The translations under genes were made by a program, and so were the position numbers. DNA of 64,000 nt, taken from the NCBI GenBank assembly GCA_043228905.1, contig JBHGNT010000008.1, forward strand, positions 186,001 through 250,000. Direction: 5' to 3'. The stretch is from Azolla caroliniana. Its lineage: Eukaryota; Plantae; Polypodiophyta. Within the stretch, counting starts at the first letter, position 1, and the number at the start of each line of letters is the position of its first letter. Positions 6,490-52,400 of this stretch are shown piece by piece. A model generated the notes under the pieces. The model was not told where the DNA came from and ran no database searches. It was given only the letters and a program-made list of their open reading frames with translations.

Positions 6490-9400
6490 GGAATTTCTTC
6501 ATCTCTCTCGACCTGAGTTTCAAAATCTAGATTTTTGATTTCCATAACATAGCTCGCATTGTTAGCTTCGATTCACATATTTGAACACTAAAATCCGATA
6601 TCATATGGGCCAGGTATGAACATTTTAATTTACTCTCGGCCTCTTCTCTACTCCCTCCTCTAATTTGGTAATTTCTTCATGTCTCTCGACCTGAGTTTCA
6701 AAACCTTGATTTTTTAATTCGATATCATAGCTAGACTTGTTAGCTTCGATTCGTATGTTTGAACACTAAAATCCGATATCACATGGGCCAGGTATGAACA
6801 TTTTAATTTACTCTCGGGCTCTTCTCTACTCCCTCCTCTAATTTTGGAATTTCTTCATGTCTCTCGACGTGGGTTTCCAAAGCTTGATTTTTTAATTCCA
6901 TATCATAGGTACCTTTGCTAGCTTCGATTCACATGTTTAAACACTAAAATCCGATATCACATGGGCCAGGTATGAACATTTTAATTTAATCTCGGGCTCT
7001 TCTCAACTACCTCCTCAAATTTGGTAATTTCTTCGTGTCTCTCGACCTGAGTTTCAAAAGCTTGATTTTTTAATGCCATATCATATCTAGCATTGTTAGC
7101 TTCGATTCGCCTATTTGAACACTAAAATCCGATCTTCAATGGGCCAGTTATGAACATTTTAATTTACTCTCGGCCTCTTCTCTACTCCTTCCTCTAATTA
7201 GGTAATTTCTTCATGTCTTTCGACATGAGTTTCAAAAGATTGATTTTTTAATTCGATATCATAGGTAGCATTGTTAGCTTCGATTCGCATGTTTGAACAC
7301 TAAAATCCTATATCACATGGGCCAGGTATAACATTTTAATTTACTCATGCGCTCTTCTCAATCCCTCCTTTAATTTGGTAATTTCATCATGTCTCTCGAC
7401 ATGAGTTTCAAAATCTTGATTTTTTAATTCCATATCATAGCTACCGTTGTTAGCTTCGATTCGCATGTTTGAACACTAAAATCCGATATCACATGGGCCA
7501 GGTATGAACATTTTAATTTACTCTCGGGCTCTTCTCAACTCCCTCCTCTAATTTGGTAATTTCTTCATATCTCTCGACCTGAGTTTCCAAAGCTTGATTT
7601 TCTAATGCCATATCATAGCTAGCATTGTTAGCTTCGATTCGCATGTTTGAACACTAAAGTCCGATATCACATGGGCCAGGTATGAACATTATAATTTACT
7701 CTCGGGCTCTTCTCAACTCCCTCCTGAAATTTGGTTATTTTTTCATGTCTCTTGACGTGAGTTTCAAAAGCTTGATTTTTGAATTCCATATCATAGGTAG
7801 CTGTGCTAGCTTCGATTCGCAAGTTTGAACACTAAAATCCGATATCACATGGGCCAGGTATGAACATTTTAATTTACTCTCGGGCTCTTCTCTACTCCCT
7901 CCTCTAATTTTGGAATTTCTTCATGTCTCTCGACCTGACTTTCAAAATCTTGATTTTTTAATTCCATAACATAGCTCGCATTGTTAGCTTCGATTCGCAA
8001 GTTTGAACACTAAAATCCGATATCACATGGGCCAGGTATGAACATTTTAATTTACTCTCGGGCTCTTCTCTACTCCCTCCTCTAATTTCGGAATTTCTTC
8101 ATGTCTCTCGACCTGAGTTTCAAAATCTTGATTTTTGATTTCCATAACATAGCTCGCATTGTTAGCTTCGATTCGCATATTTGAACACTAAAATCCGATA
8201 TCACATGGGCCAGGTATGAACATTTTAATTTACTCTCGGGCTCTTCTCAACTACCTCCTCAAATTTGGTAATTTCTTCGTGTCTCTCGACCTGAGTTTCA
8301 AAAGCTTGATTTTCTAATGCCATATCATATCTAGCATTGTTAGCTTCGATTCCCATGTTTGAACACTAAATTCCGATATCACATGGGCCAGGTATGAACA
8401 TTTTAATTTACTCTCGGGCTCTTCTCAATCCCTCCTCTAATTTGGTAATTTCTTCATGTCTCTCGACCTGAGTTTCAAAATCTTGATTTTTTAATTCCAT
8501 ATCATAGCTAGCATTGTTAGCTTCAATTCGCCTGTTTGAACACTAAAATCCGATATTCAATGGGCCAGTTATGAACATTTTAATTTACTCTCGGCCTCTT
8601 CTCTACTCCTTCCTCTAAATGGGTAATTTCTTCATGTCTTTCGACATGAGTTTCAAAAGATTGATTTTTTAAGTCCATATCATAGGTAGCATTGTTAGCT
8701 TCGATTCGCATGTTTGAACACTAAAATCCTATATCACATGGGCCAGGTATGAAGCTTTTAATTTACTCTCGGGCTCTTCTCAACTCCCTCCTCTAATTTG
8801 GTAATTTCTTCATATCTCTCGACCTGAGTTTCCAAAGCTTGATTTTCTAATGCCATATCATAGCTAGCATTGTTAGCTTCGATTCGCATGTTTGAACACT
8901 CAAGTCCGATATCACATGGGCCAGGTATGAACATTTTAATTTACTCTCGGGCTCTTCTCAACTCCCTCCTCAAATTTGGTTATTTCTTCATGTCTCTTGA
9001 CGTGAGTTTCAAAAGCTTGATTTTTTAATTCCATATCATAGGTAGCATTGTTAGCTTCGATTCGCATGTTTGAACACAAAAATCCGATATCACATGGGCC
9101 AGGGCTGAACATTTTAATTTACCCTCGGGCTCGTCTCAACTCCCTCCTCAAATTTGGTAATTTCTTCATGTCTCTCGACCTGAGTTTCAAAAGCTTCATT
9201 TTTTAATTCCATATCATAGGTAGCATTGTTAGCTTCAATTAGCATGTTTGAACACAAAAATCCGATATCACATGGGCCAGGTATGAACATTTTAATTTAC
9301 TCTCGGGCTCTTCTCAACTCCCTCGTCTAATTTGGTAATTTCTTCATATCTTTCGACCTGAGTTTCCAAAGATTGATTTTCTAATGCCATATCATAGCTA

Positions 9401-20840: not shown

Positions 20841-23800
20841 CATTTTAATTTACTCTCGGGCTCTTCTCAATCCCTCCTCTAATTTGGTAATATCTTCATG
20901 TCTCTCGACCTGAGTTTCAAAATCTTGATTTTTTAATTCCATATCATAGCTAGCATTGTTAGCTTCGATTCGCATGTTTGAACACAAAAATCCGATATCA
21001 CATGGGCCAGGTATGAACATTTTAATTTACTCATGCGCTCTTCTCAATCCCTCCTTTATTTTGGTAATTTCTTCATGTCTCTCGACCTGAGTTTCAAAAG
21101 CTTCATTTTTTAATTCCATATCATAGGTAGCATTGTTAGCTTCGATTCGCATGTTTGAACACAAAAATCCGATATCACATGGCCTAGGTATGAAGATTTT
21201 AATTTACTCTCGGGCTCTTCTCAACTCCCTCCTCTAATTTGGTAATTTCTTCATATCTCTCGACCTGAGTTTCCAAAGCTTGATTTTCTAATGCCATATC
21301 ATAGCTAGCATTGTTAGCTTCGATTCGCATGTTTGAACACTCAAATCCGATATCACATGGGCCAGGTATGAACATTTTAATTTACTCTCGGGCTCTTCTC
21401 AACTCCCTCCTCAAATTTGGTTATTTCTTCATGTCTCTTGACGTGAGTTTCAAAAGCTTGATTTTTTAATTCCATATCATAGGTAGCATTGTTAGCTTCG
21501 ATTCGCATGTTTGACCACAAAAATCCGATATCACATGGGCCAGGGCTGAACATTTTAATTTACTCTCGAGCTCGTCTCAACTCCCTCCTCAAATTTGCTA
21601 ATTTCTTCAATGGGCCAGTTATGAACATTTTAATTTACTCTCGGCCTCTTCTCTACTCCTTCCTCTAATTAGGTAATTTCTTCATGTCTTTCGACATGAG
21701 TTTCAAAAGATTGATTTTTTAATTCGATATCATAGGTAGCATTGTTAGCTTCGATTCGCATGTTTGAACACTAAAATCCTATATCACATGGGCCAGGTAT
21801 AACATTTTAATTTACTCATGCGCTCTTCTCAATCCCTCCTTTAATTTGGTAATTTCATCATGTCTCTCGACATGAGTTTCAAAATCTTGATTTTTTAATT
21901 CCATATCATAGCTACCGTTGTTAGCTTCGATTCGCATGTTTGAACACTAAAATCCGATATCACATGGGCCAGGTATGAACATTTTAATTTACTCTCGGGC
22001 TCTTCTCAACTCCCTCCTCTAATTTGGTAATTTCTTCATATCTCTCGACCTGAGTTTCCAAAGCTTGATTTTCTAATGCCATATCATAGCTAGCATTGTT
22101 AGCTTCGATTCGCATGTTTGAACACTAAAGTCCGATATCACATGGGCCAGGTATGAACATTATAATTTACTCTCGGGCTCTTCTCAACTCCCTCCTGAAA
22201 TTTGGTTATTTTTTCATGTCTCTCGACCTGACTTTCAAAAGCTTGATTTTTGAATTCCATATCATAGCTAGCATTGTTAGCTTCGATTCCCATGTTTGAA
22301 CACTAAAATCCGATATCACATGGGCCAGGTATGAACATTTTAATTTTCTCTCGGGCTCTTCTCAATCCCTCCTCTAATTTGGTAATATCTTCATGTCTCT
22401 CGACCTGAGTTTCAAAATCTTGATTTTTTAATTCCATATCATAGCTAGCATTGTTAGCTTCGATTCGCATGTTTGAACACAAAAATCCGATATCACATGG
22501 GCCAGGTATAACATTTTAATTTACTCATGCGCTCTTCTCAATCCCTCCTTTAATTTGGTAATTTCTTCATGTCTCTCGACATGAGTTTCAAAATCTTGAT
22601 TTTTTAATTCGATATCATAGCTACCGTTGTTAGCTTCGATTCGCATGTTTGAACACTAAAATCCGATATCACATGGGCCAGGTATGAACATTTTAATTTA
22701 CTCTCGGGCTCTTATCAACTCCCTCCTCAAATTTGGTTATTTCTTCATGTCTCTCAACGTGACTTTCAAAATCCTTATTTTTTACTTCCATATGATAGCT
22801 AACATTGTAAGCTTCGATACAAATGTTTGAACACTAAAATCCGATATCAGATGGGACAGGTATGAACATTTTAATTTACTCTCGGGCTCTTCTCAACTCC
22901 CTCCTCAAATTTGGTAATTTCTTCATGTCTCTCGACCTGAGTTTCAAAAGCTTCATTTTTTAATTCCATATCATAGGTAGCATTGTTAGCTTCAATTAGC
23001 ATGTTTGAACACAAAAATCCGATATCACATGGGCCAGGTATGAACATTTTAATTTACTCTGGGGCTCTTCTCAACTCCCTCCTCTAATTTGGTAATTTCT
23101 TCATATCTCTCGACCTGAGTTTCCAAAGATTGATTTTCTAATGCCATATCATAGCTAGCCTTGTTAGCTTCGATTCGCATATTTGAACACTAAAATCCGA
23201 TATCACATGGGCCAGGTATGAACATTTTAATTTACTCTAGGCCTCTTCTCTACTCCCTCCTCTAATTTGGTAATTTCTTCATGTCTCTCGACCTGAGTTT
23301 CAAAACAATTATTTTTTAATTCCATATCATAGCTAGCATTGTTAGCTTCGATTCCCATGTTTGAACACTAAATTCCGATATCACATGGGCCAGGTATGAA
23401 CATTTTAATTTACTCTCGGGCTCTTCTCAATCCCTCCTCTAATTTGGTAATTTCTTCATGTCTCTCGACCTGAGTTTCAAAATCTTGATTTTTCAATTCC
23501 ATATCATAGGTAGCATTGTTAGATTCGATTCGCCTGTTTGAACACTAAAGTCCGATATTCAATGGGCCAGTTATGAACATTTTAATTTACTCTCGGGCTC
23601 TTCTCAATCCCTCCTCTAATCTGGTAGTTTCTTCATGTCTCTCGACCTGAGTTTCAAACTCTTGATTTTTTAATTCCATATCATAGCTAGCATTGTTAGA
23701 TTCGATTCGCCTGTTTGAACACTAAAATCCGATATTCAATGGGCCAGTTATGAACATTTTAATTTACTCTTGGCCTCTTCTCTACTCCTTCCTCTAATTT

Positions 23801-29800: not shown

Positions 29801-31679
29801 TTTTAATTTGCTCTCGGGCTCTTCTCAACTCCCTCCTCTAATCTGGTAATTTCTTCATATCTCTCGACGTGAGTTTCCAAAGCTTGATTTTCTAATGCCA
29901 TATCATAGCTAGCATTGTTAGCTTCGATTCACATGTTTGAACACTCAAATCCGATATCACATGGGCCAGGTATGAACATTTTAATTTACTCTCGGGCTCT
30001 TCTCAACTCCCTCCTCAAATTTGGTTATTTCTTCATGTCTCTTGACGTGAGTTTCAAAAGCTTGATTTTTGAATTCCATATCATAGGTAGCTTTGCTAGC
30101 TTCGATTCGCAAGTTTGAACACTAAAATCCGATATCACATGGGCCAGGTATGAACATTTTAATTTACTCTCGGGCTCTTCTCTACTCCCTCCTCTAATTT
30201 TGGAATTTCTTCATGTCTCTCGACCTGAGTTTCAAAATCTTGATTTTTGATTTCCATAACATAGCTCGCATTGTTAGCTTCGATTCGCATATTTGAACAC
30301 TAAAATCCGATATCACATGGGCCAGGTATGAACATTTTAATTTACTCTCGGCCTCTTCTCAACTCCCTCCTCTAATTTGGTAATTTCTTCATATCTCTCG
30401 ACCTGAGTTTCCAAAGATTGATTTTCTAATGCCATATCATAGCTAGCCTTGTTATCTTCGATTCGCATGTTTGAACACTCAAATCCGATATCACATGGGC
30501 CAGGTATGAACATTTTAATTTACTCTCGGGCTCTTCTCAACTCCCTCCTCAAATTTGGTTATTTCTTCCTGTCTCTTGACGTGAGTTTCAAAAGCTTGAT
30601 TTTTGAATTCCATATCATAGCTAGCATTGTTAGCTTCGATTCCCATGTTTGAACACTAAAATCCGATATCACATGGGCCAGGTATGAACATTTTAATTTA
30701 CTCTCGGGCTCTTCTCAATCCCTCTTCTAATTTGGTAATATCTTCATGTCTCTCGACCTGAGTTTCAAAATCTTGATTTTTTAATTCCATATCATAGCTA
30801 GCATTGTTAGCTTCGATTCGCATGTTTGAACACAAAAATCCGATATCACATGGGCCAGGTATGAACATTTTAATTTACTCATGCGCTCTTCTCAATCCCT
30901 CCTTTAATTTGGTAATTTCTTCATGTCTCTCGACATGAGTTTCAAAATCTTGATTTTTTAATTCGATATCATAGCTACCGTTGTTAGCTTCGATTCGCAT
31001 GTTTGAACACTAAAATCCGATATCACATGGGCCAGGTATGAACATTTTAATTTACTCTCGGGCTCTTCTCAACTCCCTCCTCAAATTTGGTAATTTCTTC
31101 ATGTCTCTCAACGTGAGTTTCAAAATCCTTATTTTTTACTTCCATATGATAGCTAACATTGTAAGCTTCGATTCAAATGTTTGAACACTAAAATCCGATA
31201 TCAGATGGGACAGGGATGAACATTTTAATTTACTCTCGGGCTCTTCTCAACTCCCTCCTCAAATTTGGTAATTTCTTCATGTCTCTCGACCTGAGTTTCA
31301 AAAGCTTCATTTTTTAATTCCATATCATAGGTAGCATTGTCAGCTTCGATTCGCATGTTTGAACACAAAAATCCGATATCACATGGCCTAGGTATGAAGA
31401 TTTTAATTTACTCTCGGGCTCTTCTCAACTTTCCTCCTTTAATTTGGTAATTTCTTCATATCTCTCGACCTGAGTTTCCAAAGCTTGATTTTCTAATGCC
31501 ATATCATAGCTAGCATTGTTAGCTTCGATTCGCATGTTTGAATACTCAAATCCGATATCACATGGGCCAGGTATGAACATTTTAATTTACTCTCGGGCTC
31601 TTCCTAACTCCCTCCTCAAATTTGGTTATTTCTTCATGTCTCTTGACCTGAGTTTCAAAAGCTTGATTTTTTATATTAA

Positions 31680-32045
31680 TAGACTATATAATGTCTTATA
31701 CGAGGAGTGCGGGCACGATACTTCTTTGGCTGTGATTAGTGTTATTTGGTTAACTATTTGAGGATTTAGGGTTTGGGTTTGAAGGTTTCAGGTATATGGG
31801 CTAACTGAGGTTTTTGGGTTAAATATCTTAAGGGTTTAGGGTTTTGTTCGGAGGGTTTAGGGCATATGGGTAAAATATCTGAGGGTTTAGGGTTTGGTAG
31901 ACTATATGATGTATTGCACGAGGAAAGCGGGCACGATACTTATTTAGGCTACGACTAGTGTTATTAGGTTAACTATTCTTAGGGTTTATGGGTTTGTTCT
32001 GAGGGTTTAGGGTATATGGGTTAAAATATTCTGAGGGTTTAGGGT
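31680..32045. repeat. Diverged direct duplication at the element's 3' end (unit starts 31680 and 31898, offset 218 bp)
   Basis: TAGACTATATAATGTCTTATACGAGGAGTGCGGGCACGATACTTCTTTGGCT...GGTTAACTATT aligns with TAGACTATATGATGTATTGCACGAGGAAAGCGGGCACGATACTTATTTAGGCT...GGTTAACTATT. Each is followed by GAGGGTTTAGGG-ATATGGG-AAAATAT-CTGAGGGTTTAGGG subunits. Confidence 0.88.
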
Positions 32046-32181
32046 AGTGTGTGCAAAAGTAAAGGTATTAAGGATTGGTAGGTTTAGGGTTTTAGTGGTA
32101 AGGGGAGATATGTTTGGAGAGGTATGATGATGAGGGTATGGGTTGGCGGGGATATAATGTGTTAGGGTTATTAGTTTAGGG
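31765..32181 (+). repeat. Cluster of interspersed plant-type telomere motifs (TTTAGGG on +; CCCTAAA on the element's sense strand)
   Basis: Exact TTTAGGG at 31765, 31835, 31856, 31886, 32006, 32038, 32083 and 32175. Five of these sit in the longer form AGGGTTTAGGG (31831, 31852, 31882, 32002, 32034). Confidence 0.85.
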
Positions 32182-32346
32182 TTGCGGGTATTGGGTAGGT
32201 TAAAGATTAAGGGAAAGAGGGGGGAGTGCCACGTTTTACTTAGTGGGAATGAAATAGCATATATATTATTGAAAGCACAACTAACCACAACATAAAAACA
32301 ATAGACACTTGAGAAGAAAATATATATTGATCAAATATATATTAAT

Positions 32347-32405
32347 ATGACCTATGTAGCAAACTAGTTTCGCTCATATATGGAGCTCATCAGTGCTTAG
32401 GTCAT
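32347..32405 (-). ncRNA. Minimal type I hammerhead ribozyme (PLE-associated)
   Basis: The minus strand reads AUGACCUA-AGCA-CUGAUGA-GCUC-CAUAUAU-GAGC-GAAAC-UA-GUU^UGCU-ACA-UAGGUCAU. It has an intact CUGAUGA/GAAA core, stem II GCUC/GAGC, stem I of 4 bp + 3-nt bulge + 8 bp, and a palindromic stem III (AAACUAGUUU). Predicted cleavage is after GUU, between 32362 and 32361. Confidence 0.93.
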
Positions 32406-32747
32406 TTTCGAGTACAAAGGTAAGTTTATATAGGTTTGTGGTAAGGGGGGTGTAAGATGAGTGGTGGACAAGAGTGATAAATGTGAAAAGAAGTGAGGAG
32501 TATGGGAGGGAGTGGTGTAACACGGTGATAAGGGGGCAAGATATGATTTTGTAAAGGGAGGGGGTGGGTATCATGAGTTTGATAGAGATAAGTGGGTAAC
32601 TAGAGGGTATAATAATGGTGATAAGTGGGTGACCGGAGGGTATGATAAGTGAGGGGAGGGGTGTGTATATGTGTGTGATGGTGGCTAGTACGAGGTAAAG
32701 ATGTGGGTGAAAAACTAGGGGAATACGAATTTAATAGTTATGGGGAA

Positions 32748-33122
32748 TGAGGAGAGAGAGAGAGAGAGATAGAGAGAGAAATTTAACTAATGAGAAGAGA
32801 GTGTGAATAAAGGTGAGAAAAAGAGAGAGGGAGAGAGAGAGAGAGAGAAAAGAAAAAAAAAGGAAAGAAAGAAAGAAGAGAGACATAGAGAAAAGAAAAG
32901 GTAGAGAGGGAGAAAAAAGGAAAAGAAAAAAGAGGTGAGTTTTAGAGTGTAGAGAGGGAGAAAAGTAAAGGTAGAGAGAGAGGAAAAAGAAATGATTTAG
33001 AGAGGGAGAAAGGTAAAGGTAGAGAGAGAAAGAGAAGGGGAGGGAAGGAGGAGATAGAGATAGAGAAAGGGAAAGTTAAGAGAGAAGAAATGTGAAGGTA
33101 GAGAGGGAGAAGATAGGGGGAG
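32748..33122 (+). repeat. Polypurine/(GA)n low-complexity tract (polypyrimidine in the element's 3' UTR)
   Basis: About 370 bp almost entirely G/A on the + strand, with (GA)n and (GAAA)n runs and a recurring GTAGAGAG(A/G)GAG module. Confidence 0.9.
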
Positions 33123-33192
33123 ATCCTCACGTGGTAAATATAGGGAGATAAAACTTGTGGTTTAAAAATAAATATAAAAATATGGAGAGGAG

Positions 33193-34326
33193 TTAGTGTG
33201 GATCTATAGTAATGTTTTTTGTGTTGACTAGTGAAGAGTGTAGATTTTTAGATTTAGTCCAACAAATTATTGGTTTGGGGATGTGTTGTAGTAGAGGGTC
33301 TTCTTGGAGGTTTAAGTGTAGGCTAGTAAGGGTTTCTTTTATTCCTAGATTAGGGGCTTGGTGTGTGAATTTTAGTTTAAAGATTATGGGTGTGGGGGTT
33401 TGGTTAATGGTTTTGTTTGAGAGGAGAGTTGGTCTAAGGGAATAGGGGTGTTTTTTGAATATATTGAGGATAAACTGTGTAGGGTATCCTCGTGCTCGTA
33501 GTCTCTTAAAAAATAGTTGTTGCATTTTTAAATAACCTTGGGCTGTACTTTCTCTAATAATGTATCTTTTAAGTTCGTTCGAGAGGAAGCTTTTTTTGAC
33601 GTGGATAGGATGTGTCGAGGTGAAGGGTATGTATTGGTAAGTATTAAGTTCTTTTTGAAAACAATTAAAGTTGAAATTATTATTAGCGAGGTTTATCCAA
33701 AGGTCGAGAAAAGGAAGTTTAGTGAGAGAGGTTTGGATGGTCAGTTTAATGGAGTTTTGAGTGGTAATACTATAGAAATTTAGGTAGTCTAAGAGTTGTG
33801 TTTTCGTACCGGTCCATACACCAAAGGCATCGTCAATATATCTCGTGAAATAAAATAAATGGGGAGATGGGTTGGAATTCTCGAGGTATGACAAAAGAAG
33901 GCAAGCATATACTACGGAAAAATTGCTTCCCATGGCTGTGCCTTTAATTTGTTGATAGATTTGGTTATTAAATTTAAGGAAGTGATATTCTAAGGTTAAG
34001 GCGCTGAGAGTATAGATGAGGTTGGCTTTTTGTTTTGAGAAATGGGGGGTAATTAGGTGTTTTAGGGCTAGTAGTCCTAGTTTTGGTGGAATACTCGGGT
34101 AGAGGGATTCTACGTCAAATGAAAAGATGAAGCTATTGGGTGGTGTCGTGAGGTTTTCTAGGGATTGTACTAAGGAGAATGAGTCTCTAAGGTATTGTTT
34201 TTGTTGTAGGAGTATGGGGAGGAGTTGGTGGTGTAGCCACTTAGAAGTTTGTTCAAATAACGAACCGTTGTAAGAACAAATAGGCCTATAGCCAATGGGT
34301 TCTTTGTGTACTTTGGGTAGGAAGTA
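33193..34326 (-). CDS. PLE reverse transcriptase (RT core + thumb), N-terminally truncated, 377 open codons
   Basis: Manual translation upstream of the track ORF (33193..33933) stays open to the satellite junction: YFLPKVHKEPIGYRPICSY (motifs 1/2), FSFDVESLYPSIP (motif A), YQQIKGTAMGSNFS (motif B'), RYIDD (motif C), LPFLDL (motif E), YQYIPFTSTHP and LRARGYP (PLE thumb), then SKNLHSSLV...DPH-stop. The track's Met is internal to motif B' (GTAMG), so it is not a real start. Confidence 0.93.
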   Translation of the reverse strand, partial: YFLPKVHKEPIGYRPICSYNGSLFEQTSKWLHHQLLPILLQQKQYLRDSFSLVQSLENLTTPPNSFIFSFDVESLYPSIPPKLGLLALKHLITPHFSKQKANLIYTLSALTLEYHFLKFNNQIYQQIKGTAMGSNFSVVYACLLLSYLENSNPSPHLFYFTRYIDDAFGVWTGTKTQLLDYLNFYSITTQNSIKLTIQTSLTKLPFLDLWINLANNNFNFNCFQKELNTYQYIPFTSTHPIHVKKSFLSNELKRYIIRESTAQGYLKMQQLFFKRLRARGYPTQFILNIFKKHPYSLRPTLLSNKTINQTPTPIIFKLKFTHQAPNLGIKETLTSLHLNLQEDPLLQHIPKPIICWTKSKNLHSSLVNTKNITIDPH

Positions 34327-36639
34327 TCATAGGTAGCTGTGCTAGCTTCGATTCGCAAGTTTGAACACTAAAATCCGATATCACATGGGCCAGGTATGAA
34401 CATTTTAATTTACTCTCGGGCTCTTCTCTACTCCCTCCTCTAATTTTGGAATTTCTTCATGTCTCTTGACCTGACTTTCAAAATCTTGATTTTTTAATTC
34501 CATAACATAGCTCGCATTGTTAGCTTCGATTCGCAAGTTTGAACACTAAAATCCGATATCACATGGGCCAGGTATGAACATTTTAATTTACTCTCGGGCT
34601 CTTCTCTACTCCCTCCTCTAATTTCGGAATTTCTTCATGTCTCTCGACCTGAGTTTCAAAATCTTGATTTTTGATTTCCATAACATAGCTCGCATTGTTA
34701 GCTTCGATTCGCATATTTGAACACTAAAATCCGATATCACATGGGCCAGGTATGAACATTTTAATTTACTCTGAACCTCTTCTCTACTCCCTCCTCTAAT
34801 TTGGTAATTTCTTCATGTCTCGCGACCTGAGTTTCAAAACATTGATTTTTTAATTCCATATCATAGCTAGCATTGTTAGCTTCGATTCCCATGTTTGAAC
34901 ACTAAATTCCGATATCACATGGGCCAGGTATGAACATTTTAATTTACTCTCGCGCTCTTCTCAATCCCTCCTCTAATTTGGTAATTTCTTCATGTCTCTC
35001 GACCTAAGTTTCAAAATCTTGATTTTTTAATTCCATATCATAGCAAGCATTGTTAGCTTCGATTCGCCTGTTTGAACACTAAAATCCGATATTCAATGGG
35101 CCAGTTATGAACATTTTAATTTACTCTCGGCCTCTTCTCTACTCCTTCCTCTAAATGGGTAATTTCTTCATGTCTTTCGACATGAGTTTCAAAAGATTGA
35201 TTTTTTAAGTCCATATCATAGGTAGCATTGTTAGCTTCGATTCGCATGTTTGAACACTAAAATCCTATATCACATGGGCCAGGTATGAACATTTTAATTT
35301 ACTCTCGGGCTCTTCTCAACTCCCTCCTCTAATTTGGTAATTTCTTCATATCTCTCGACCTGAGTTTCCAAAGCTTGATTTTCTAATGCCATATCATAGC
35401 TAGCATTGTTAGCTTCGATTCGCATGTTTGAACACTCAAGTCCGATATCACATGGGCCAGGTATGAACATTTTAATTTACTCTCGGGCTCTTCTCAACTC
35501 CCTCCTCAAATTTGGTTATTTCTTCATGTCTCTTGACGTGAGTTTCAAAAGCTTGATTTTTTAATTCCATATCATAGGTAGCATTGTTAGCTTCGATTCG
35601 CATGTTTGAACACAAAAATCCGATATCACATGGGCCAGGGCTGAACATTTTAATTTACTCTCGGGCTCGTCTCAACTCCCTCCTCAAATTTGGTAATTTC
35701 TTCATGTCTCTCGACCTGAGTTTCAAAAGCTTCATTTTTTAATTCCATATCATAGGTAGCATTGTTAGCTTCAATTAGCATGTTTGAACACAAAAATCCG
35801 ATATCACATGGGCCAGGTATGAACATTTTAATTTACTCTCAGGCTCTTCTCTACTCCCTCCTCTAATTTTGGAATTTCTTCATGTCTCTCGACCTGAGTT
35901 TCAAAATCTTGATTTTCTAATGCCATATCATAGCTAGCCTTGTTAGCTTCGATTCGCATATTTGAACACTAAAATCCGATATCACATGGGCCAGGTATGA
36001 ACATTTTAATTTACTCTAGGCCTCTTCTCTACTCCCTCCTCTAATTTGGTAATTTCTTCATGTCTCTCGACCTGAGTTTCAAAACATTGATTTTTTAATT
36101 CCATATCATAGCTAGCATTGTTAGCTTCGATTCCCATGTTTGAACACTAAATTCCGATATCACATGGGCTAGGTATGAACATTTTAATTTACTCTCGGGC
36201 TCTTCTCAATCCCTCCTCTAATTTGGTAATTTCTTCATGTCTCTCGACCTGAGTTTCAAAATCTTGATTTTTTAATTCCATATCATAGGTAGCATTGTTA
36301 GATTCGATTCGCCTGTTTGAACACTAAAGTCCGATATTCAATGGGCCAGTTATGAACATTTTAATTTACTCTCGGGCTCTTCTCAATCCCTCCTCTAATT
36401 TGGTAATTTCTTCATGTCTCTCGACCTGAGTTTCAAAATCTTGATTTTTTAATTCCATATCATAGCTAGCATTGTTAGATTCGATTCGCCTGTTTGAACA
36501 CTAAAATCCGATATTCAATGGGCCAGTTATGAACATTTTAATTTACTCTTGGCTTCTTCTCTACTCCTTCCTCTAATTTGGTAATTTCTTCATGTCTTTC
36601 GACATGAGTTTCAAAAGATTTATTTTTTAAGTCCATATC

Positions 36640-41050: not shown

Positions 41051-44000
41051 GAGATTCAAAACCTTGATTTTTTAATTCGATATCATAGCTAGCCTTGTTA
41101 GCTTCGATTCGTATGTTTGAACACTAAAATCCGATATCACATGGGCCAGGTATGAACATTTTAATTTACTCTCGGGCTCTTCTCAACTCCCTCCTCAAAT
41201 TTGGTTATTTCTTCATGTCTCTCAACGTGACTTTCAAAATCCTTATTTTCTACTTCCATATGATAGCTAACATTGTAAGCTTCGATTCAAATGTTTGAAC
41301 ACTAAAATCCGATATCACATGGGACAGGTATGAACATTTTAATTTGATCTCGGGCTCTTCTCAACTCCCTCCTCAAATTTGGTAATTTCTTCATGTCTCT
41401 CGACCTGAGTTTCAAAAGCTTCATTTTTTAATTCCATATCATAGGTAGCATTGTTAGCTTCAATTAGCATGTTTGAACACAAAAATCCGATATCACATGG
41501 GCCAGGTATGAACATTTTAATTTACTCTGGGGCTCTTCTCAACTCCCTCCTCTAATTTGGTAATTTCTTCATATCTCTCGACCTGAGTTTCCAAAGATTG
41601 ATTTTCTAATGCCATATCATAGCTAGCCTTGTTAGCTTCGATTCGCATGTTTGAACACTCAAATCCGATATCACATGGGCCAGGTATGAACATTTTAATT
41701 TATGCTCGGGCTCTTCTCAACTCCCTCCTCAAATTTGGTTATTTCTTCATGTCTCTTGATGTGAGTTTCAAAAGCTTGATTTTTGAATTCCATATCATAG
41801 GTAGCTTTGCTAGCTTCGATTCGCAAGATTGAACACTAAAATCCGATATCACATGGGCCAGGTATGAACATTTTAATTTACTCTCTGCCTCTTCTCTACT
41901 CCCTCCTCTAATTTCGTAATTTTTTCATGTCTTTCAACATGAGTTTCAAAAGATTTATTTTTTAAGTCCAAATCATAGGTAGCATTGTTAGCTTCGATTC
42001 GCATGTTTGAACACTAAAATCCTATATCACATGGGCCAGGTATGAACATTTTAATTTACTCATGCGCTCTTCTCAATCCCTCCTTTAATTTGGTAATTTC
42101 TTCATGTCTCTCGACCTGAGTTTCAAAACCTTGATTTTTTAATTCGATATCATAGCTAGCCTTGTTGGCTTCGATTGGTATGTTTGAACACTAAAATCCG
42201 ATATCACATGGGCCAGGTATGAACATTTTATTTTACTCTCGGGCTCTTCTCAATCCCTCCTCAAATTTGGTTATTTCTTCATGTCTCTCAACGTGACTTT
42301 CAAAATCTTGATTTTTTAATTCCATATCATAGCTAGCATTGTTAGCTTCGATTCGCATATTTGAACACTAAAATCCGATATCACATGGGCCAGGTATGAA
42401 CATTTTAATTTACTCTCGGCCTCTTCTCTACTTCCCTCCTCAAATTTGGTTATTTCTTCATGTCTCTCAACGTGACTTTCAAAATCCTTATTTTTTACTT
42501 CCATATGATTGCTAACATTGTAACCTTCGATTCAAATGTTTGAACACTAAAACCCGATATCACATGGGACAGGTATGAACATTTTAATTTGATCTCGGGC
42601 TCTTCTCAACTCCCTCCTCAAATTTGTTAATTTCTTCATGTCTCTCGACCTGAGTTTCAAAAGCTTCATTTTTTAATTCCATATCATAGGTAGCATTGTT
42701 AGCTTCAATTCGCATGTTTGAACACAAAAATCCGATATCACATGGGCCAGGTATGAACATTTTAATTTACTCTCGGGCTCTTCTCAACTCCCTCCTCTAA
42801 TTTGGTAATTTCTTCATATCTCTCGACCTGAGTTTCCAAAGCTTGATTTTCTAATGCCATATCATAGCTAGCCTTGTTAGCTTCGATTCGCATGTTTGAA
42901 CACTCAAATCCGATATCACATGGGCCAGGTATGAACATTTTAATTTACTCTCGGACTCTTCTCAACTCCCTCCTCAAATTTGGTTATTTCTTCATGTCTC
43001 TCGACCTGAGTTTCAAATCCGATATTCAATGGGCCAGTTATGAACATTTTAATTTACTCTCGGCCTCTTCTCTACTCCTTCCTCTAATTTGGTAATTTCT
43101 TCATGTCTCTCGACCTGAGTTTCAAAATCTTGATTTTTGATTTCCATAACATAGCTCGCATTGTTAGCTTCGATTCGCATATTTGAACACTAAAATCCGA
43201 TATCACATGGGCCAGGTATGAACATTTTAATTTACTCTCGGCCTCTTCTCAACTCCCTCCTCTAATTTGGTAATTTCTTCATATCTCTCGACCTGAGTTT
43301 CCAAAGATTGATTTTCTAATGCCATATCATAGCTACCCTTGTTAGCTTCGATTCGCATGTTTGAACACTCAAATCCGATATCACATGGGCCAGGTATGAA
43401 CATTTTAATTTACTCTCGGGCTCTTCTCAACTCCCTCCTCAAATTTGGTTATTTCTTCCTGTCTCTCGACGTGACTTTCAAAAGCTTGATTTTTGTATTC
43501 CATATCATAGCTAGCATTGTTAGCTTCGATTCCCATGTTTGAACACTAAAATCCGATATCACATGGGCCAGGTATGAACATTTTAATTTACTCTCGGGCT
43601 CTTCTCAATCCCTCCTCTAATTTGGTAATATCTTCATGTCTCTCGACCTGACTTTCAAAATCTTGATTTTTTAATTCCATATCATAGCTAGCATTGTTAG
43701 CTTCGATTCGCCTGTTTGAACACTAAAATCCGATATTCAATGGGCCAGTTATGAACATTTTAATTTACTCTCGGCCTCTTCTCTACTGCTTCCTCTAATT
43801 TGGTAATTTCTTCATGTCTTTCGACATGAGTTTCAAAAGATTGATTTTTTAAGTCCATATCATAGGTAGCATTGTTAGCTTCGATTCGCATGTTTGAACA
43901 CTAAAATCCTATATCACATGGGCCAGGTATGAACATTTTAATTTACTCATGCGCTCTTCTCAATCCCTCCTTTAATTTGGTAATTTCTTCATGTCTCTCG

Positions 44001-47000
44001 ACCTGAGATTCAAAACCTTGATTTTTTAATTCGATATCATAGCTAGCCTTGTTAGCTTCGATTCGTATGTTTGAACACTAAAATCCGATATCACATGGGC
44101 CAGGTATGAACATTTTAATTTACTCTCGGGCTCTTCTCAATCCCTCCTCAAATTTGGTTATTTCTTCATGTCTCTCAACGTGACTTTCAAAATCTTGATT
44201 TTTTAATTCCATATCATAGCTAGCATTGTTAGCTTCGATTCGCATATTTGAACACTAAAATCCGATATCATATGGGCCAGGTATGAACATTTTAATTTAC
44301 TCTCGGCCTCTTCACTACTTCCCTCCTCAAATTTGGTTATTTCTTCATGTCTCTCAACGTGACTTTCAAAATCCTTATTTTTTACTTCCATATGATTGCT
44401 AACATTGTAACCTTCGATTCAAATGTTTGAACACTAAAATCCGATATCACATGGGACAGGTATGAACATTTTAATTTGATCTCGGGCTCTTCTCAACTCC
44501 CTCCTCAAATTTGGTAATTTCTTCACAAAAATCCGATATCACATGGGCCAGATATGAACATTTTAATTTACTCTCGGGCTCTTCTCAACTCCCTCCTCTA
44601 ATTTGGTAATTTCTTCATATCTCTCGACCTGAGTTTCCAAAGCTTGATTTTCTAATGCCATATCATAGCTAGCATTGTTAGCTTGATTCGCATGTTTGAA
44701 CACTCAAATCCGATATCACATGGGCCAGGTATGAACATTTTAATTTACTCTCGGGCTCTTCTCAACTCCCTCCTCAAATTTGGTTATTTCTTCATGTCTC
44801 TTGACGTGAGTTTCAAAACCTTGATTTTTTAATTCCATATCATAGCTAGCATTGTTAGATTCGATTCGCCTGTTTGAACACTAAAATCCGATATTCAATG
44901 GGCCAGTTATGAACATTTTAATTTACTCTCGGCCTCTTCTCTACTCCTTCCTCTAAATTGGTAATTTCTTCATGTCTTTCGACATGAGTTTCAAAAGATT
45001 TATTTTTTAAATCCATATCATAGGTAGCATTGTTAGCTTCGATTCGCATGTTTGAACACTAAAATCCTATATCACATGGGCCAGGTATGAACATTTTAAT
45101 TTACTCATGCGCTCTTCTCAATCCCTCCTTTAATTTGGTAATTTCTTCATGTCTGTCGACCTGAGATTCAAAACCTTGATTTTCTAATGCCATATCATAG
45201 CTAGCCTTGTTAGCTTCGATTCGTATGTTTGAACACTAAAATCCGATATCACATGGGCCAGGTATGAAAATTTTATTTTACTCTCGGGCTCTTCTCAACT
45301 CCCTCCTCAAATTTGGTTATTTCTTCATGTCTCTCAACGTGACTTTCAAAATCCTTATTTTGTACGTCCATATGATAGCTAACATTGTAAGCTTCGATTC
45401 AAATGTTTGAACACTAAAATCCGATATCACATGGGACAGGTATGAACATTTTAATTTGATCTCGGGCTCGTCTCAACTCCCTCCTCAAATTTGGTAATTT
45501 CTTCATGTCTCTAGACCTGAGTTTCAAAAGCTTCATTTTTTAATTCCATATCATAGGTAGCATTGTTAGCTTCAATTAGCATGTTTGAACACAAAAATCC
45601 GATATCACATGGGCCAGGTATGAACATTTTAATTTACTCTCGGCCTCTTCTCAACTCCCTCCTCTAATTTGGTAATTTCTTCATATCTCTCGACCTGAGT
45701 TTCCAAAGATTGATTTTCTAATGCCATATCATAGCTAGCCTTGTTAGCTTCGATTCGTATGTTTGAACACTCAAATCCGATATCACATGGGCCAGGTATG
45801 AACATTTTAATTTACTCTCGGGCTCTTCTCAACTCCCTCCTCAAATTTGGTTATTTCTTCATGTCTCTTGACGTGAGTTTCAAAAGCTTGATTTTTGAAT
45901 TCCATATCATAGGTAGTTTTGCTAGCTTCGATTCGCAAGATTGAACACTAAAATCCGATATCACATGGGCCAGGTATGAACATTTTAATTTACTCTCGGG
46001 CTCTTCTCAATGCCTCCTCTAATTTGGTAATATCTTCATGTCTCTCGACCTGAGTTTCAAAATCTTGATTTTTTAATTCCATATCATAGCTAGCATTGTT
46101 AGCTTCGATTCGCCTGTTTGAACACTAAAATCCGATATTCAATGGGCCAGTTATGAACATTTTAATTTACTCTCGGCCTCTTCTCTACTCCTTCCTCTAA
46201 TTTGGTAATTTCTTCATGTCTTTCGACATGAGTTTCAAAAGATTGATTTTTTAAGTCCATATCATAGGTAGCATTGTTAGCTTCGATTCGCATGTTTGAA
46301 TACTTAAATCCTATATCACATGGGCCAGGTATGAACATTTTAATTTACTTATGCGCTCTTCTCAATCCCTCCTTTAATTTGGTAATTTCTTCATGTCTCT
46401 CGACCTGAGATTCAAAACCTTGATTTTTTAATTCGATATCATAGCTAGCCTTGTTAGCTTCGATTCGTATGTTTGAACACTAAAATCCGATATCACATGG
46501 GCCAGGTATGAACATTTTAATTTACTCTCGGGCTCTTCTCAACTCCCTCCTCAAATTTGGTTATTTCTTCATGTCTCTCAACGTGACTTTCAAAATCCTT
46601 ATTTTGTACTTCCATATGATAGCTAACATTGTAAGCTTCGATTCAAATGTTTGAACACTCAAATCCGATATCACATGGGCCAGGTATGAACATTTTAATT
46701 TGATCTCGGGCTCGTCTCAACTCCCTCCTCAAATTTGGTAATTTCTTCATGTCTCTGGACCTGAGTTTCAAAAGCTTCATTTTTTAATTCCATATCATAG
46801 GTAGCATTGTTAGCTTCGATTCGCCTGGTTGAACACTAAAATCCGATATTCAATGGGCCAGTTATGAACATTTTAATTTACTCTCGGCCTCTTCTCTACT
46901 CCTTCCTCTAATTAGGTAATTTCTTCATGTCTTTCGACATGAGTTTCAAAAGATTGATTTTTTAATTTGATATCATAGGTAGCATTGTTAGCTTCGATTC

Positions 47001-49499
47001 GTATGTTTGAACACTAAAATCCGATATCACATGGGCCAGGTATGAACATTTTAATTTACTCTCGGGCTCTTCTCAATCCCTCCTCAAATTTGGTTATTTC
47101 TTCATGTCTCTCAACGTGACTTTCAAAATCTTGATTTTTTAATTCCATATCATAGCTAGCATTGTTAGCTTCGATTCGCATATTTGAACACTAAAATCCG
47201 ATATCATATGGGCCAGGTATGAACATTTTAATTTACTCTCGGGCTCTTCTCTACTTCCCTCCTCAAATTTGGTTATTTCTTCATGTCTCTCAACGTGAGT
47301 TTCAAAATCCTTATTTTTTACTTCCATATGATTGCTAACATTGTAACCTTCGAGTCAAATGTTTGAACACTAAAATCCGATATCACATGGGACAGGTATG
47401 AACATTTTAATTTGATCTCGGGCTCTTCTCAACTCCCTCCTCAAATTTGGTAATTTCTTCACAAAAATCCGATATCACATGGGCCAGGTATGAACATTTT
47501 AATTTACTCTCGGGCTCTTCTCAACTCCCTCCTCTAATTTGGTAATTTCTTCATATCTCTCGACCTGAGTTTCCAAAGCTTGATTTTCTAATGCCATATC
47601 ATAGCTAGCATTGTTAGCTTGATTCGCATGTTTGAACACTCAGATCCGATATCACATGGGCCAGGTATGAACATTTTAATTTACTCTCGGGCTCTTCTCA
47701 ACTCCCTCCTCTAATTTGGTAATTTCTTCATATCTCTCGACCTGAGTTTCCAAAGCTTGATTTTCTAATGCCATATCATAGCTAGCATTGTTAGCTTCGA
47801 TTCGCATGTTTGAACACTCAAATCCGATATCACATGGGCCAGGTATGAACATTTTAATTTACTCTCGGGCTCTTCTCAACTCCCTCCTCAAATTTGGTTA
47901 TTTCTTCATGTCTCTCGACGTGAGTTTCAAAAGCTTGATTTTTTAATTCCATATCATAGCTAGCATTGTTAGATTCGATTCGCCTGTTTGAACACTAAAA
48001 TCCGATATTCAATGGGCCAGTTATGAACATTTTAATTTACTCTCAGCCTCTTCTCTACTCCTTCCTCTAAATTGGTAATTTCTTCATGTCTTTCGACATG
48101 AGTTTCAAAAGATTGATTTTTTAAGTCCATATCATAGGTAGCATTGTTAGCTTCGATTCGCATGTTTGAACACTAAAATCCTATATCACATGGGCCAGGT
48201 ATGAACATTTTAATTTACTCATGCGCTCTTCTCAATCCCTCCTTTAATTTGGTAATTTCTTCATGTCTCTCGACCTGAGTTTCAAAACCTTGATTTTTTA
48301 ATTTGATATCATAGCTAGCCTTGTTAGCTTCGATTCATATGTTTGAACACAAAAATCCGATATCACATGGGCCAGGTATGAACATTTTAATTTACTCTCG
48401 GGCTCTTCTCAACTCCCTCCTCAAATTTGGTTATTTCTTCATGTCTCTCAACGTGACTTTCAAAATCCTTATTTTTTACTTCCATATGATAGCTAACATT
48501 GTAAGCTTCGATTCAAATGTTTGAACACTAAAATCCGATATCACATGGGACAGGTAAGAACATTTTAATTTGATCTCGGGCTCTTCTCAACTCCCTCCTC
48601 AAATTTGGTAATTTTTTCATGTCTCTGGACCTGAGTTTCAAAAGCTTCATTTTTTAATTCGATATCATAGGTAGCATTTTTAGCTTCAATTCGCATGTTT
48701 GAACACAAAAATCCGATATTACATGGGCGAGGTATGAACATTTTAATTTACTCTTGGGCTCTTCTCAATCCCTCCTCTAATTTGGGAATTTCTTCATGTC
48801 TCTCGACCTGAGTTTCAAAATCTTAATTTTTTAATTCCATATCATAGCTAGCATTGTTAGCTTCGATTCGCCTGTTTGAACACTAAAATCCGATATTCAA
48901 TGGGCCAGTTATGAACATTTTAATTTACTCTCGGCCTCTTCTCTACTCCTTCCTCTAAATTGGTAATTTCTTCATGTCTTTCGACATGAGTTTCAAAAGA
49001 TTGATTTTTTAAGTCCATATCATAGGTAGCATTGTTAGCTTCGATTCGCATGTTTGAACACTAAAATCCTATATCACATGGGCCAGGTATGAACATTTTA
49101 CTTTACTCATGCGCTCTTCTCAATCCCTCCTTTAATTTGGTAATTTCTTCATGTCTCTCGACATGAGTTTCAAAATCTTGATTTTTTAATTCGATATCAT
49201 AGCTACCGTTGTTAGCTTCGATTCGCATGTTTGAACACTAAAATCCGATATCACATGGGCCAGGTATGAACATTTTAATTCACTCTCGGGCTCTTCTCAA
49301 CTCCCTCCTCAAATTTGGTTATTTCTTCATGTCTCTCAACGTGAGTTTCAAAATCCTTATTTTTTACTTCCATATGATAGCTAACATTGTAAGCTTCGAT
49401 TCAAATGTTTGAACACTAAAATTGGATATCACATGGGACAGGTATGAACATTTTAATTTACTCTCGGGCTCTTCTCTACTCCCTCCTCTAATTTGGCAA

Positions 49500-52400
49500 T
49501 TTCTTCATGTCTCTCGACCTGTGTTTGAAAACATTGATTTTTTAATTCCATAACATAGCTCGTATTGTTAGCTTCGATTCGCCTATTTGAACACTAAAAT
49601 CCGATATCACATGGGCCAGGTATGAACATTTTAATTTACTCTCGGCCTCTTCTCTACTTCCCTCCTTTAATTTGGTAATTTCTTCATGTCTCTCGACCTG
49701 AGTTTCAGAACATTGATTTTTTAATTCTATATCATAGCTAGCATTGTTAGCTTCGATTCCCATGTTTGAACACTACAATCCGATATCACATGGGCCAGGT
49801 ATGAACATTTTAATTTACTCTCGGCCTCTTCTCTACTCCCTCCTCTAATTTGGTAATTTCTTCATGTCTCTCGACCTGAGTTTCAAAACCTTGATTTTCT
49901 AATTCCATATCATAGCTAACATTCTTAGCTTCGATTCTCATGTTTGAACACTAAAATCCGATATCACATGGGCCAGGTATGAACATTTTAATTTACTCAT
50001 GCGCTCTTCTCAATCCCTCCTTTAATTTGGTAATTTCTTCATGTCTCTCGACATGAGTTTCAAAATCTTGATTTTTTAATTCCATATCATAGCTATCGTT
50101 GTTAGCTTCCATTTGCATGTTTGAACACTAATATCCGATATCACATGGGCCAGGTATGAACATTTTAATTTACTCTCGGGCTCTTCTCAACTCCCTCCTC
50201 AAATTTGGTTATTTCTTCATGTCTCTGAACGTGAGTTTCAAAATCCTTATTTTTTACTTCCATATGATAGCTAACATTTTAAGCTTAGATTCAAATGTTT
50301 GAACACTAAAATCCAATATCACATGGGACAGGTATGAACATTTTAATCTACTCTCGGGCTCTTCTCAACTCCCTCCTTTAATTTGGTAATTTCTTCATGT
50401 CTCTCGACCTGAGTTTCGAAAGCTTTATTTTTTAATTCCATATCATAAGTAGCATTGTTAGCTTCGATTCGCATGTTTGAACACAAAAATCCGATATCAC
50501 ATGGGCAAGGTATGAACATTTTAATTTACTCTCGGGCTCTTCTCAACTCCCTCCTCTAATTTGGTAATTTCTTCATATCTCTCGACCTGAGTTTCCAAAG
50601 CTTGATTTTCTAATGCCATATCATAGCTAGCATTGTTAGCTTCGATTCGCATGTTTGAACACTCAAATCCAATATCACATGGACCAGGTATGAACATTTT
50701 AATTTACTCTCGGGCTCTTCTCAACTCCCTCCTCTAATTTGGTAATTTCTTCATATCTCTCGACCTGAGTTTCCAGAGCTTGATTTTCTAATGCCATATC
50801 ATAGCTAGCATTGTTAGCTTCGATTCGCATGTTTGAACACTAAAATCCTATATCACATGGGCCAGGTATGAACATTTTAATTTACTCATGCGCTCTTCTC
50901 AATCCCTCCTTTAATTTGGTAATTTCTTCATGTCTCTCGACATGAGTTTCAAAATCTTGATTTTTTAATTCCATATCATAGCTATCGTTGTTAGCTTCCA
51001 TTCGCATGTTTCAACACTAAAATCCGATATCACATGGGCTAGGTATGAACATTTTAATTTACTCTCGGGCTCTTCTCAACTCCCTCCTCAAATTTGGTTA
51101 TTTCTTCATGTCTCTGAACGTGAGTTTCAAAATCCTTATTTTTTACTTTCATATGATAGCTAACATTTTAAGCTTAGATTCAAATGTTTGAACACTAAAA
51201 TCCAATATCACATGGGACAGGTATGAACATTTTAATTTACTCTCGGGCTCTTCTCAACTCCCTCCTCAAATTTGGTTATTTCTTCATGTCTCTGAACGTG
51301 AGTTTCAAAATCCTTATTTTTTACTTTCATATGATAGCTAACATTTTAAGCTTAGATTCATATGTTTGAACACTAAAATCCAATATCACATGGGACAGGT
51401 ATGAACATTTTAATCTACTCTCGGGCTCTTCTCAATCCCTCCTTTAATTTGGTAATTTCTTCATGTCTCTCGACATGAGTTTCAAAATCTTGATTTTTTA
51501 ATTCCATATCATAGCTATCGTTGTTAGCTTCCATTCGCATGTTTCAACACTAAAATCCGATATCACATGGGCCAGGTATGAACATTTTAATTTACTCTCG
51601 GGCTCTTCTCAACTCCCTCCTCAAATTTGGTAATTTCTTCATGTCTCCATAACATAGCTCGTATTGTTAGCTTCGATTCGCCTATTTGAACACTAAAATC
51701 CGATATCACATGGGCCAGGTATGAACATTTTAATTTACTCTCGGCCTCTTCTCTACTTCCCTCCTCTAATTTGGTAATTTCTTCATGTCTCTCGACCTGA
51801 GTTTCAGAACATTGATTTTTTAATTCTATATCATAGCTAGCATTGTTAGCTTCGATTCCCATGTTTGACCACTACAATCCGATATCACATGGGCAAGGTA
51901 TGAACATTTTAATTTACTCTCGGGCTCTTCTCAATCCCTCCTCTAATTTGGTAATTTGTTCATGTCTCTTGACCTGAGTTTCAAAAGCTTCATTTTTTAA
52001 TTCCATATCATAGCTAGCATTGTTAGCTTCGATTCGCCTGTTTGAACACTAAAATCCGATATTCAATGGGCCAGTTATGAACATTTCAATTTACTCTCGG
52101 CCTCTTCTCAATTCCTCCTCTAATTTGGTAATTTCTTCATGTCTCTCGACCTGAGTTTCAAAATCTTGATTTTTTAATTCCATATCATTGCTAGCATTGT
52201 TAGCTTCGATTCGCCTGTTTGAACACTAAAATCCGATCTCACATGGGCCAGTTATGAACATTTTAATTTACTCTTGGCCTCTTCTCTACTCCTTCCTCTA
52301 ATTTGGTAATTTCTTCATGTCTTTCGACATGAGTTTCAAAAGATTAATTTTTTAATTCCATATCATAGGTAGCATTGTTAGCTTCGATTCGCATGTTTGA

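Follow-up and report, generated by a model that had tools for sequence, protein, structure and literature searches.

The 64-kb window analysed here (64,000 nucleotides (nt) of Azolla caroliniana contig JBHGNT010000008.1) is a 178-bp satellite array broken by one insert, at 31673-34324 on the minus strand. This insert is probably a dead copy, young and truncated at its 5' side, of an autonomous retrotransposon with two open reading frames (ORFs), belonging to the endonuclease-deficient (EN-; Coprina/Athena-type) branch of Penelope-like elements (PLEs) and to a lineage confined to streptophyte plants, and it may have entered the array by reverse transcription primed from an annealed satellite end. 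It corresponds to the 3' 2.65 kb of a 6.1-kb element, each boundary being ambiguous by 1-2 nt. Tandem Repeats Finder (TRF) delimits 178-bp arrays at 1-31673 and 34325-64000 (88-91% matches, with a 356-bp dimer period too), and a BLAST search of the window with the monomer shows only one interruption of at least 30 nt, at 31674-34345; the insert is the sole non-satellite DNA. The arm at 1-31672 adjoins the element's 3' end, and the arm at 34325-64000 continues in the same phase. An earlier note on this DNA had described a PLE embedded in a centromere-like 178-bp satellite, and the arrays on both sides of the single gap confirm the satellite, whose monomer size and array length would suit a centromere-like status. 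Plus-strand GC skew shifts from about -0.23 in the satellite to +0.67 in the insert, making the minus strand the G-poor sense strand; its 2651 nt comprise 185 G, 833 C, 793 A and 840 T (7% G).

Reverse transcriptase, parent element and relatives

The insert opens into a reverse transcriptase (RT) ORF (33193-34323, minus strand; 376 codons plus a stop at 33193-33195) that begins with FLPKVHKEPIGYRPI and is open from the truncation point, the remaining two frames being full of stops. RT motifs 1-7 and the thumb are present, including LPKVHK and YRPI (motifs 1-2), FDVESLYPSIP (34087-34119) and RYIDD (33823-33843), and the frame gives a weak match to Pfam RVT_1 (E 5.8e-4). No GIY-YIG domain was found in the window ORF, which stops just past the thumb. 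Its best database match, P0001 (636 aa, 99% identical), differs from it at 2 positions over the C-terminal 376 aa, has DUF8422, RVT_1 and HTH_animal as precomputed domains and carries an LPADKNVG motif. PF01541 (GIY-YIG) is absent from P0001 and from the ORF2 products (620-636 aa) of all subfamilies introduced below, supporting the earlier reading of an RT that has no C-terminal endonuclease. This domain was present in 3 of the 120 relatives listed, P0072 being one GIY-YIG-bearing PLE, and a C-terminal tail of more than 100 aa is rare among the 203 relatives that cover the RT, the nearest of which are almost all plain RT-only proteins. The combination of a PLE-type RT with an N-terminal DKN domain, seen in full-length P0001, and a thumb identifies the protein as that of a PLE. 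Features of a long interspersed nuclear element (LINE) were not found in the insert, as there is no endonuclease, no A-tail (it ends in ...TAGTCTATTAATAT) and no target-site duplication. The window copy lacks the first 260 residues of P0001, ADKN motif included, and therefore cannot be autonomous. Searched against PDB, P0001 alone gave no match, and a profile of 23 sequences retrieved generic RTs only (group II intron and retron; best E 4.5e-6), TERT coming out at E 0.3; we know of no solved PLE RT structure for comparison.

P0001 is encoded on the metagenome-assembly contigs L001-L004, plus L020, to which the parent element can be traced. The insert is 98.8-99.1% identical over ~2.68 kb to L001 3556-6230 and to the equivalents in L002, L003 and L004, and comparison of these contigs with one another resolves a single ~6.1-kb unit, joined head-to-tail, which comprises ORF1 (875 aa; L004 43-2670), ORF2 (636 aa; L004 2730-4640) and a 1.5-kb 3' region. 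Units stand head-to-tail in L001-L004, L006, L007, L012, L016, L018 and L020, so the 3' region of each serves as the pseudo-long terminal repeat (pseudo-LTR) of the next unit; the window copy is solo. In L001 and L002 a truncated copy is genuinely joined to the unit that follows it, and a Joint Genome Institute (JGI) scan with the 3'-terminal motif added a single tandem contig, L020, with no further junctions. At least five further subfamilies (L005-L017), at RT identities of 65-86%, have the same two-ORF plan. ORF1 consists of a conserved ~300-aa N-terminal domain and a hypervariable N/P-rich tail; it had no meaningful domain match in Pfam, and its first 300 residues, modelled with AlphaFold from 6 sequences, gave a low-confidence structure (predicted local distance difference test, pLDDT, 53) with long helices only. 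Judging from the 99%-identical copies, the intact state of both ORFs and the many subfamilies, the family seems to have been recently active.

Poverty in G extends to the whole family in this host. At every codon position of ORF1 and ORF2 in the host subfamilies, the L004 and L008 ORFs included, the share of G is 5-12% and that of A about 35%, unlike the Cryptomeria and Selaginella relatives (16-23% G). In the host RT, represented by L004 ORF2 with its 99% identity to the window copy, the residues Gly, Ala, Val, Asp, Glu and Arg stand at ~2.5% apiece. The trait is old, since subfamilies at 65% identity have it in common, and it does not preclude intact ORFs. A G-poor sense strand makes the first-strand cDNA G-rich, and the candidate causes are a mutational bias or selection for an unstructured C-rich RNA or a G-rich end. 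The parallel with the strand bias of insect telomeric retrotransposons deserves a look.

Two trees, one made with FastTree from 196 sequences and the other a quick IQ-TREE analysis of 51 sequences (LG+C20 mixture model, SH-aLRT support, midpoint root), agree on the placement of the RT. The host subfamilies form a clade (support 100) nested within a second clade (support 99) that holds Cryptomeria japonica proteins and Selaginella moellendorffii P0034 / LOC112343723. Next outward are P0122 (support 95) and a clade including a Closterium protein, and on the far side of the midpoint root from the window RT are the PLEs with GIY-YIG and those of animals. The earlier note had proposed an RT phylogeny; the trees here, run without labelled reference clades, group the window RT with Selaginella and Cryptomeria and apart from GIY-YIG PLEs.

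Several of these relatives are associated with telomere repeats. The Selaginella element (L019) has CCCTAAA tracts in sense orientation on both sides (1464-1709 and 8913-9060), and the Cryptomeria locus is made of tandem 4.3-kb units with a hammerhead in each. Two contigs from the host family are capped at the 5' side by C-strand repeats, a feature that the window copy does not share: L001 615-637 reads CCCAAACCCTAAACCCTAAACCC, a (CCCTAAA)3 cap directly ahead of a copy truncated inside ORF1, and in L015, a relative 49% identical, a 120-nt tract of CCCTAAA / CCCTAAACCCTGAA (3443-3564) stands upstream of the TATA box, hammerhead and ORFs. C-strand repeats in sense orientation on the 5' side are predicted by a model in which copies are added to a G-strand end and telomerase then caps them (PMC6431247, PMC13159263). 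Together with the head-to-tail arrangement and the hammerhead-bearing relatives, the shared clade with a telomere-flanked Selaginella element and the two capped contigs agree with the earlier proposal of an EN- telomere-associated PLE, and the telomere type fits the TTTAGGG-telomere host proposed with it. The sequence upstream of the L001 cap (1-615) is neither G-poor nor PLE-like, so that this telomere seed is interstitial. Within the L015 tract, 3443-3520 is a telomere-like array with a 14-nt unit (CCCTAAACCCTGAA) that grades into canonical CCCTAAA.

Hammerhead ribozyme and 3' region

A type-I hammerhead is predicted at 32347-32406 (minus strand; core 32367-32393), with cleavage expected after GUU at 32362. 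No part of the core is missing: CUGAUGA, stem II (4 bp), GAAAC, stem III (the palindrome ACUAGU) and the GUU site are all there. Stem I of the window copy pairs AAUGACCU..GCA with UGC..AGGUCAU, the fold has a z-score of -3.4, and the PLE-associated Rfam family HH9 matches at 23.2 bits (E 0.013). Five diverged subfamilies and Cryptomeria retain the motif, with base changes that compensate one another: distal stem I occurs as AUGACCU/AGGUCAU, AGACCUU/AAGGUCU or GGUCUU/AAGACC, and stem II is GCUC/GAGC, with an extra U-A pair in L012, or GGGG/CCCC in Cryptomeria. Across subfamilies stem III is invariably palindromic over 6 nt (ACUAGU or ACAUGU), and GUU is the cleavage site throughout. These covariations were taken from individual folds because MAFFT misaligned distal stem I. 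The hammerhead recognised in the earlier note is borne out by the complete core, the HH9 match and the covariation, and it lies in the terminal (pseudo-LTR) repeat, as is characteristic of PLEs. A short palindromic helix III has been read as a sign of action in dimers (Cervera and De la Pena; PMC4209133). In L002 (3549-3574) the hammerhead has changed from GCA to ACA in stem I and from GAGC to GAGU in stem II, and single copies therefore decay while the motif stays conserved between subfamilies. In the Cryptomeria japonica locus (L018; BSEH01000784.1) each unit has a 5S ribosomal RNA-like segment between the RT ORF and the hammerhead (3767-3865 and 8106-8204), one scoring 38.0 bits, equal to the gathering score, and the other 32.9.

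The 3' region has the same order in each host subfamily examined: the ORF2 stop, a C/T-rich spacer, TATA(T/A)A, the hammerhead, (CT)n, a CCCTAA-type block, a terminal motif and the ATGGAGG start of the next ORF1, the CCCTAA-type block being variable (absent in L006, dense in L012). In the window copy the spacer from the RT stop to the promoter-like box (32434-33192, minus strand) is nearly G-free and contains low-complexity repeats. The TATA box, CTATATAAAC (32424-32433, minus strand), lies 39 nt upstream of the CUGAUGA core, and TATA(T/A)A is found at -37 to -39 from CUGAUGA in five host subfamilies (window/L004, L006, L012, L013 and L016) with diverged flanks; a conserved TTGTA comes after the box in the window copy, L006, L012, L013 and L016. 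The TATA box and ribozyme of the solo copy thereby form a putative cassette, promoter-like in sequence and facing outward into the satellite. One copy, in L014 (4629-4988, minus strand), adjoins an ORF call that has a SUEL-lectin domain; the 3' region of this copy stops close to the TATA box and holds no hammerhead. Copies therefore vary at their 3' ends, and not all of them are in satellite.

Beyond the ribozyme, a cluster of C-strand telomere-like motifs (CCCTAAACCCT and variants) occupies 31761-32186 on the minus strand, its repeat units ~50-150 nt apart. Five exact and two one-mismatch occurrences of CCCTAAACCCT, all on the minus strand, fall within 31761-32044, against 0.52 expected and with 0 of 100 shuffles reaching 7, which upholds the TTTAGGG-like 3' module of the earlier note; the sense strand of 31771-32181 holds ten CCCTAA and no TTAGGG. 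The seven motifs lie 170-600 nt past the cleavage site, a position typical of EN- PLEs, though they are dispersed and form no terminal tract. The 3'-terminal motif itself (31673-31721, minus strand) ends in ...TAGTCTATTAATAT, is followed directly in tandem copies by the ORF1 leader (ATGGAAAATCATGATTTTACT ATGGAGG) and is homologous to GTCGCTCGCACTCCTTGTA... ahead of ORF1 in L006 and L012. An internal copy of it (GTATCGTGCCCGC..CCTCGT..ATATAGTCTA; 31897-31939, minus strand) forms a direct repeat at 85% identity with a spacing of 218.

Junctions and the route of insertion

The sequence of intact monomers is ...GCTA(G/C)CTATGATATGGAATTAAAAAATCAAGCTTTTGAAAC..., their spacing being constant in 295 of 300, and the interrupted monomer reads ...CCTATGATA | element | (T)AAAAAATCAAGC..., placing the insertion point at ...CTATGATA^TGGAATT.... 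Satellite phase is kept across the insert, ~6-8 nt (TGGAATT) of one monomer have been lost, and no target-site duplication was found at this insertion. The 5' flank (34325-34334, minus strand) shares an exact 2-nt microhomology, TA, and an imperfect one, ATGATA vs ATGTA, with the element just upstream of the truncation. At the other end, the 3' flank (31655-31672, minus strand) matches at 12 of 18 positions, in register, the leader lying directly beyond the end of the unit in tandem copies, and the gap-free alignment to these copies runs 17 nt into the flank (window TTAATAT|AAAAAATCAAGCTTTTGA vs tandem copies TTAATAT|GGAAAATCATGATTTTAC). Some 5 of about 360 monomer positions on both strands score 11 or more against the leader, and among four subfamilies a satellite-like junction is confined to that of the window, for which 6 of 300 shuffles reach the score, vs 51-269 of 300 for the others. 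The 20 nt past the unit end were also considered as a satellite remnant; this was ruled out, since a homologous leader occupies the same place in other subfamilies.

The in-register match of the 3' flank suggests that reverse transcription was primed by annealing at an end of the satellite DNA. An element that has no nuclease would need a pre-existing DNA 3' end, in keeping with the priming model for EN- PLEs (PMC8557442, PMC6431247, PMC13159263). At chromosome ends the C-rich motifs of the element RNA would pair with the G-overhang. Within the array, an exposed satellite 3' end may instead have annealed to the ORF1 leader of a read-through (tandem) transcript, which is satellite-like there (AAAAUCAUGAUUUU vs AAAATCAAGCTTTT). 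The RT would then have extended the annealed end until the cDNA stopped or broke at RT motif 1, and this cDNA could have been joined to the other satellite end by the 2-nt microhomology, with a loss of ~7 nt of target and no target-site duplication.

The same junctions might have been produced by passive capture at a double-strand break, in which a free cDNA, an extrachromosomal circle or a piece of a tandem array is taken up through microhomology-mediated end joining or template switching with no priming at the site. We regard this as unlikely, though the lack of a target-site duplication, the ~7-nt deletion and the microhomology at both junctions are a signature of end joining too, and several of the contigs are graph cycles, which would be compatible with circles. 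Primed synthesis predicts the in-register 3' homology and the orientation shared with L002, and reverse transcription that aborts typically leaves copies cut short at the 5' side but complete at the 3' end; neither argument settles the matter.

Several observations count against an EN- PLE inserted by annealing at a satellite end. The junction homology is modest (roughly p 0.01-0.02) in AT-rich sequence, and an antisense control of the window subfamily also gave 11 of 300 shuffles. The evidence comprises one insertion in the window and one further satellite junction, that of L002, where a copy truncated in ORF1 abuts an 81%-identical satellite variant in the same relative orientation. Neither junction of the window copy has telomere repeats, satellite being on both sides, and none of the sequencing runs listed is recorded as RNA. 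The HH9 score is under the gathering score of 52 and cleavage is a prediction from sequence, the term Coprina-type is applied by proxy through the Selaginella element and the literature, the tree having no labelled Coprina, Athena or TERT sequences, and the full-length contigs are metagenomic, several being graph cycles with 55-nt end overlaps that consequently do not fix tandem copy number. The earlier suggestion that the family colonises or heals satellite arrays accordingly stands as far as the window insertion and the L002 junction go, and these alone do not fully support it.

A broader version of annealing-primed insertion, which we hold to be possible but doubtful, gives one subfamily a second landing site. 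The read-through leader would pair with a fixed monomer position of the 178-bp, possibly centromeric, satellite, array breaks or replication ends would repeatedly be 'healed' at that one position and in one orientation, and each insertion would leave an outward TATA and ribozyme cassette that could transcribe satellite. Satellite junctions are thus predicted to share a fixed monomer position and a fixed orientation. A family with both telomere-capped copies and copies inside a long satellite array could show how a nuclease-free, telomerase-related retroelement uses any exposed DNA end, and whether such elements help to repair or remodel satellite arrays.

It is very improbable that the element belongs to PLE-X, a site-specific EN- lineage from inside the N-terminal-endonuclease Chlamys clade, for which the satellite would be a target recognised by a protein-based mechanism. 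PLE-X families are present in spike mosses, Chara and mosses, have no endonuclease, carry canonical hammerheads and insert internally (PMC8557442), but P0001 has five cysteines only and no CxC motif, its nearest relatives are almost all plain RT-only proteins, the Selaginella relative is flanked by telomere tracts rather than 28S sequence, and copies of the family are telomere-capped. Neither the CxC motif with an N-terminal extension nor a 28S ribosomal DNA (rDNA) target was found, the targets seen being satellite, a telomere seed and DNA beside the lectin-domain ORF. We give scarcely any credence to a buried former chromosome end, where an element added to a telomere or healed break became internal by satellite expansion or rearrangement; telomere seeds do occur on other copies of the family (L001 and L015), but one monomer continues on both sides with only ~7 nt missing and the junctions have no telomere repeats. 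Satellite arrays are hard to assemble, but a PLE read mis-joined into a collapsed array is just as implausible, given that both junctions lie in one monomer with phase kept and that independent runs hold ~0.8 of the sampled words of a 3-kb stretch including the junctions, the junction words themselves not being proven present.

The array itself contains local TRF periods of 75, 92, 109, 143, 269, 287 and 465 bp (at 21535-21684, 42550-43482, 44253-44794, 47189-47730 and 51503-51791), which are phase shifts that arose via partial-monomer deletions or duplications. ORFs of 67-81 aa recur with the satellite (29915-31761 on the plus strand, and elsewhere) as mechanical products of the repeat, and one of the satellite ORFs, at 31516-31761, spans the 3' junction of the insert.

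Comparison with known systems

Endonuclease-independent L1 insertions resemble the window insertion in that they use pre-existing DNA ends, leave no target-site duplication, delete small amounts of target and have microhomology at their junctions. L1 and the Drosophila telomeric elements HeT-A/TART differ from it in their non-LTR (LINE) RT of an unrelated clade and in having no ribozyme. HeT-A/TART share with it the use of pre-existing DNA ends and a strand-asymmetric base composition (PMC12477314, PMC5537684). The earlier note took centromeric satellites to be an unusual place for PLEs, in agreement with an atlas of centromeres from 325 species in which Penelope is noted for chordates alone (bioRxiv 10.64898/2026.09.17.752431).

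Among EN- PLEs, PLE-X of Selaginella and Chara (Craig et al. 2021, PMC8557442) is likewise a plant/streptophyte lineage with internal sites and canonical hammerheads, but is set apart by its CxC motif, N-terminal extension, nesting in the Chlamys clade and 28S rDNA target (PMC8557442). Athena and the Terminons of bdelloid rotifers are EN-deficient, have several ORFs including coiled-coil ones, form head-to-tail chains, and have 5'-truncated copies capped by short telomere stretches and reverse-complement telomere repeats downstream of the hammerhead (PMC6431247). Terminons differ in reaching up to 40 kb, in their many accessory genes and in a telomere-complementary stretch immediately after the ribozyme (PMC6431247). 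Athena and the Terminons would also belong to a different RT clade. Coprina-1_Alen of Ascochyta lentis has two ORFs, of which ORF1 carries a coil domain and ORF2 DKN, RT and thumb, as well as direct-repeat flanks (PMC13159263). It differs in being fungal and in lying strictly at chromosome ends, between telomere repeats, in 13 of 13 copies, satellite insertions not being reported (PMC13159263).

The closest system is formed by Coprina Sm1/Sm2 of Selaginella moellendorffii (RepBase; Gladyshev & Arkhipova 2007, via PMC4209133, PMC12477314 and PMC13159263), which share a plant host, an RT-only ORF with no GIY-YIG, a terminal repeat that holds a type-I hammerhead, copies flanked by telomere sequence, and C-strand telomere repeats. 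Selaginella telomeric PLEs have been placed in Coprina (PMC13159263, PMC4209133), and telomere-associated retroelements are described as uncommon in plants, the one PLE example being that of Selaginella (PMC12477314). P0034, which falls in the same clade (support 99) as the window RT, is also from Selaginella and may correspond to Sm1/Sm2. Compared with Selaginella Coprina, the Azolla family shows ~40% RT identity, a large ORF1, extreme G-poverty, telomere-like motifs dispersed as 1.5-repeat units with no terminal tract, and a copy inside satellite rather than at a telomere. The earlier description of an undescribed family stands in part: family and host appear new (RepBase entries were not compared), but three reports already catalogue the kind in plants as Coprina Sm1/Sm2 (PMC13159263, PMC4209133, PMC12477314). 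In a kind of element that is already known, also from a plant, what appears new is the family and its host, the two-ORF plan with a TATA-ribozyme cassette, the G-poverty and the presence deep in a satellite.

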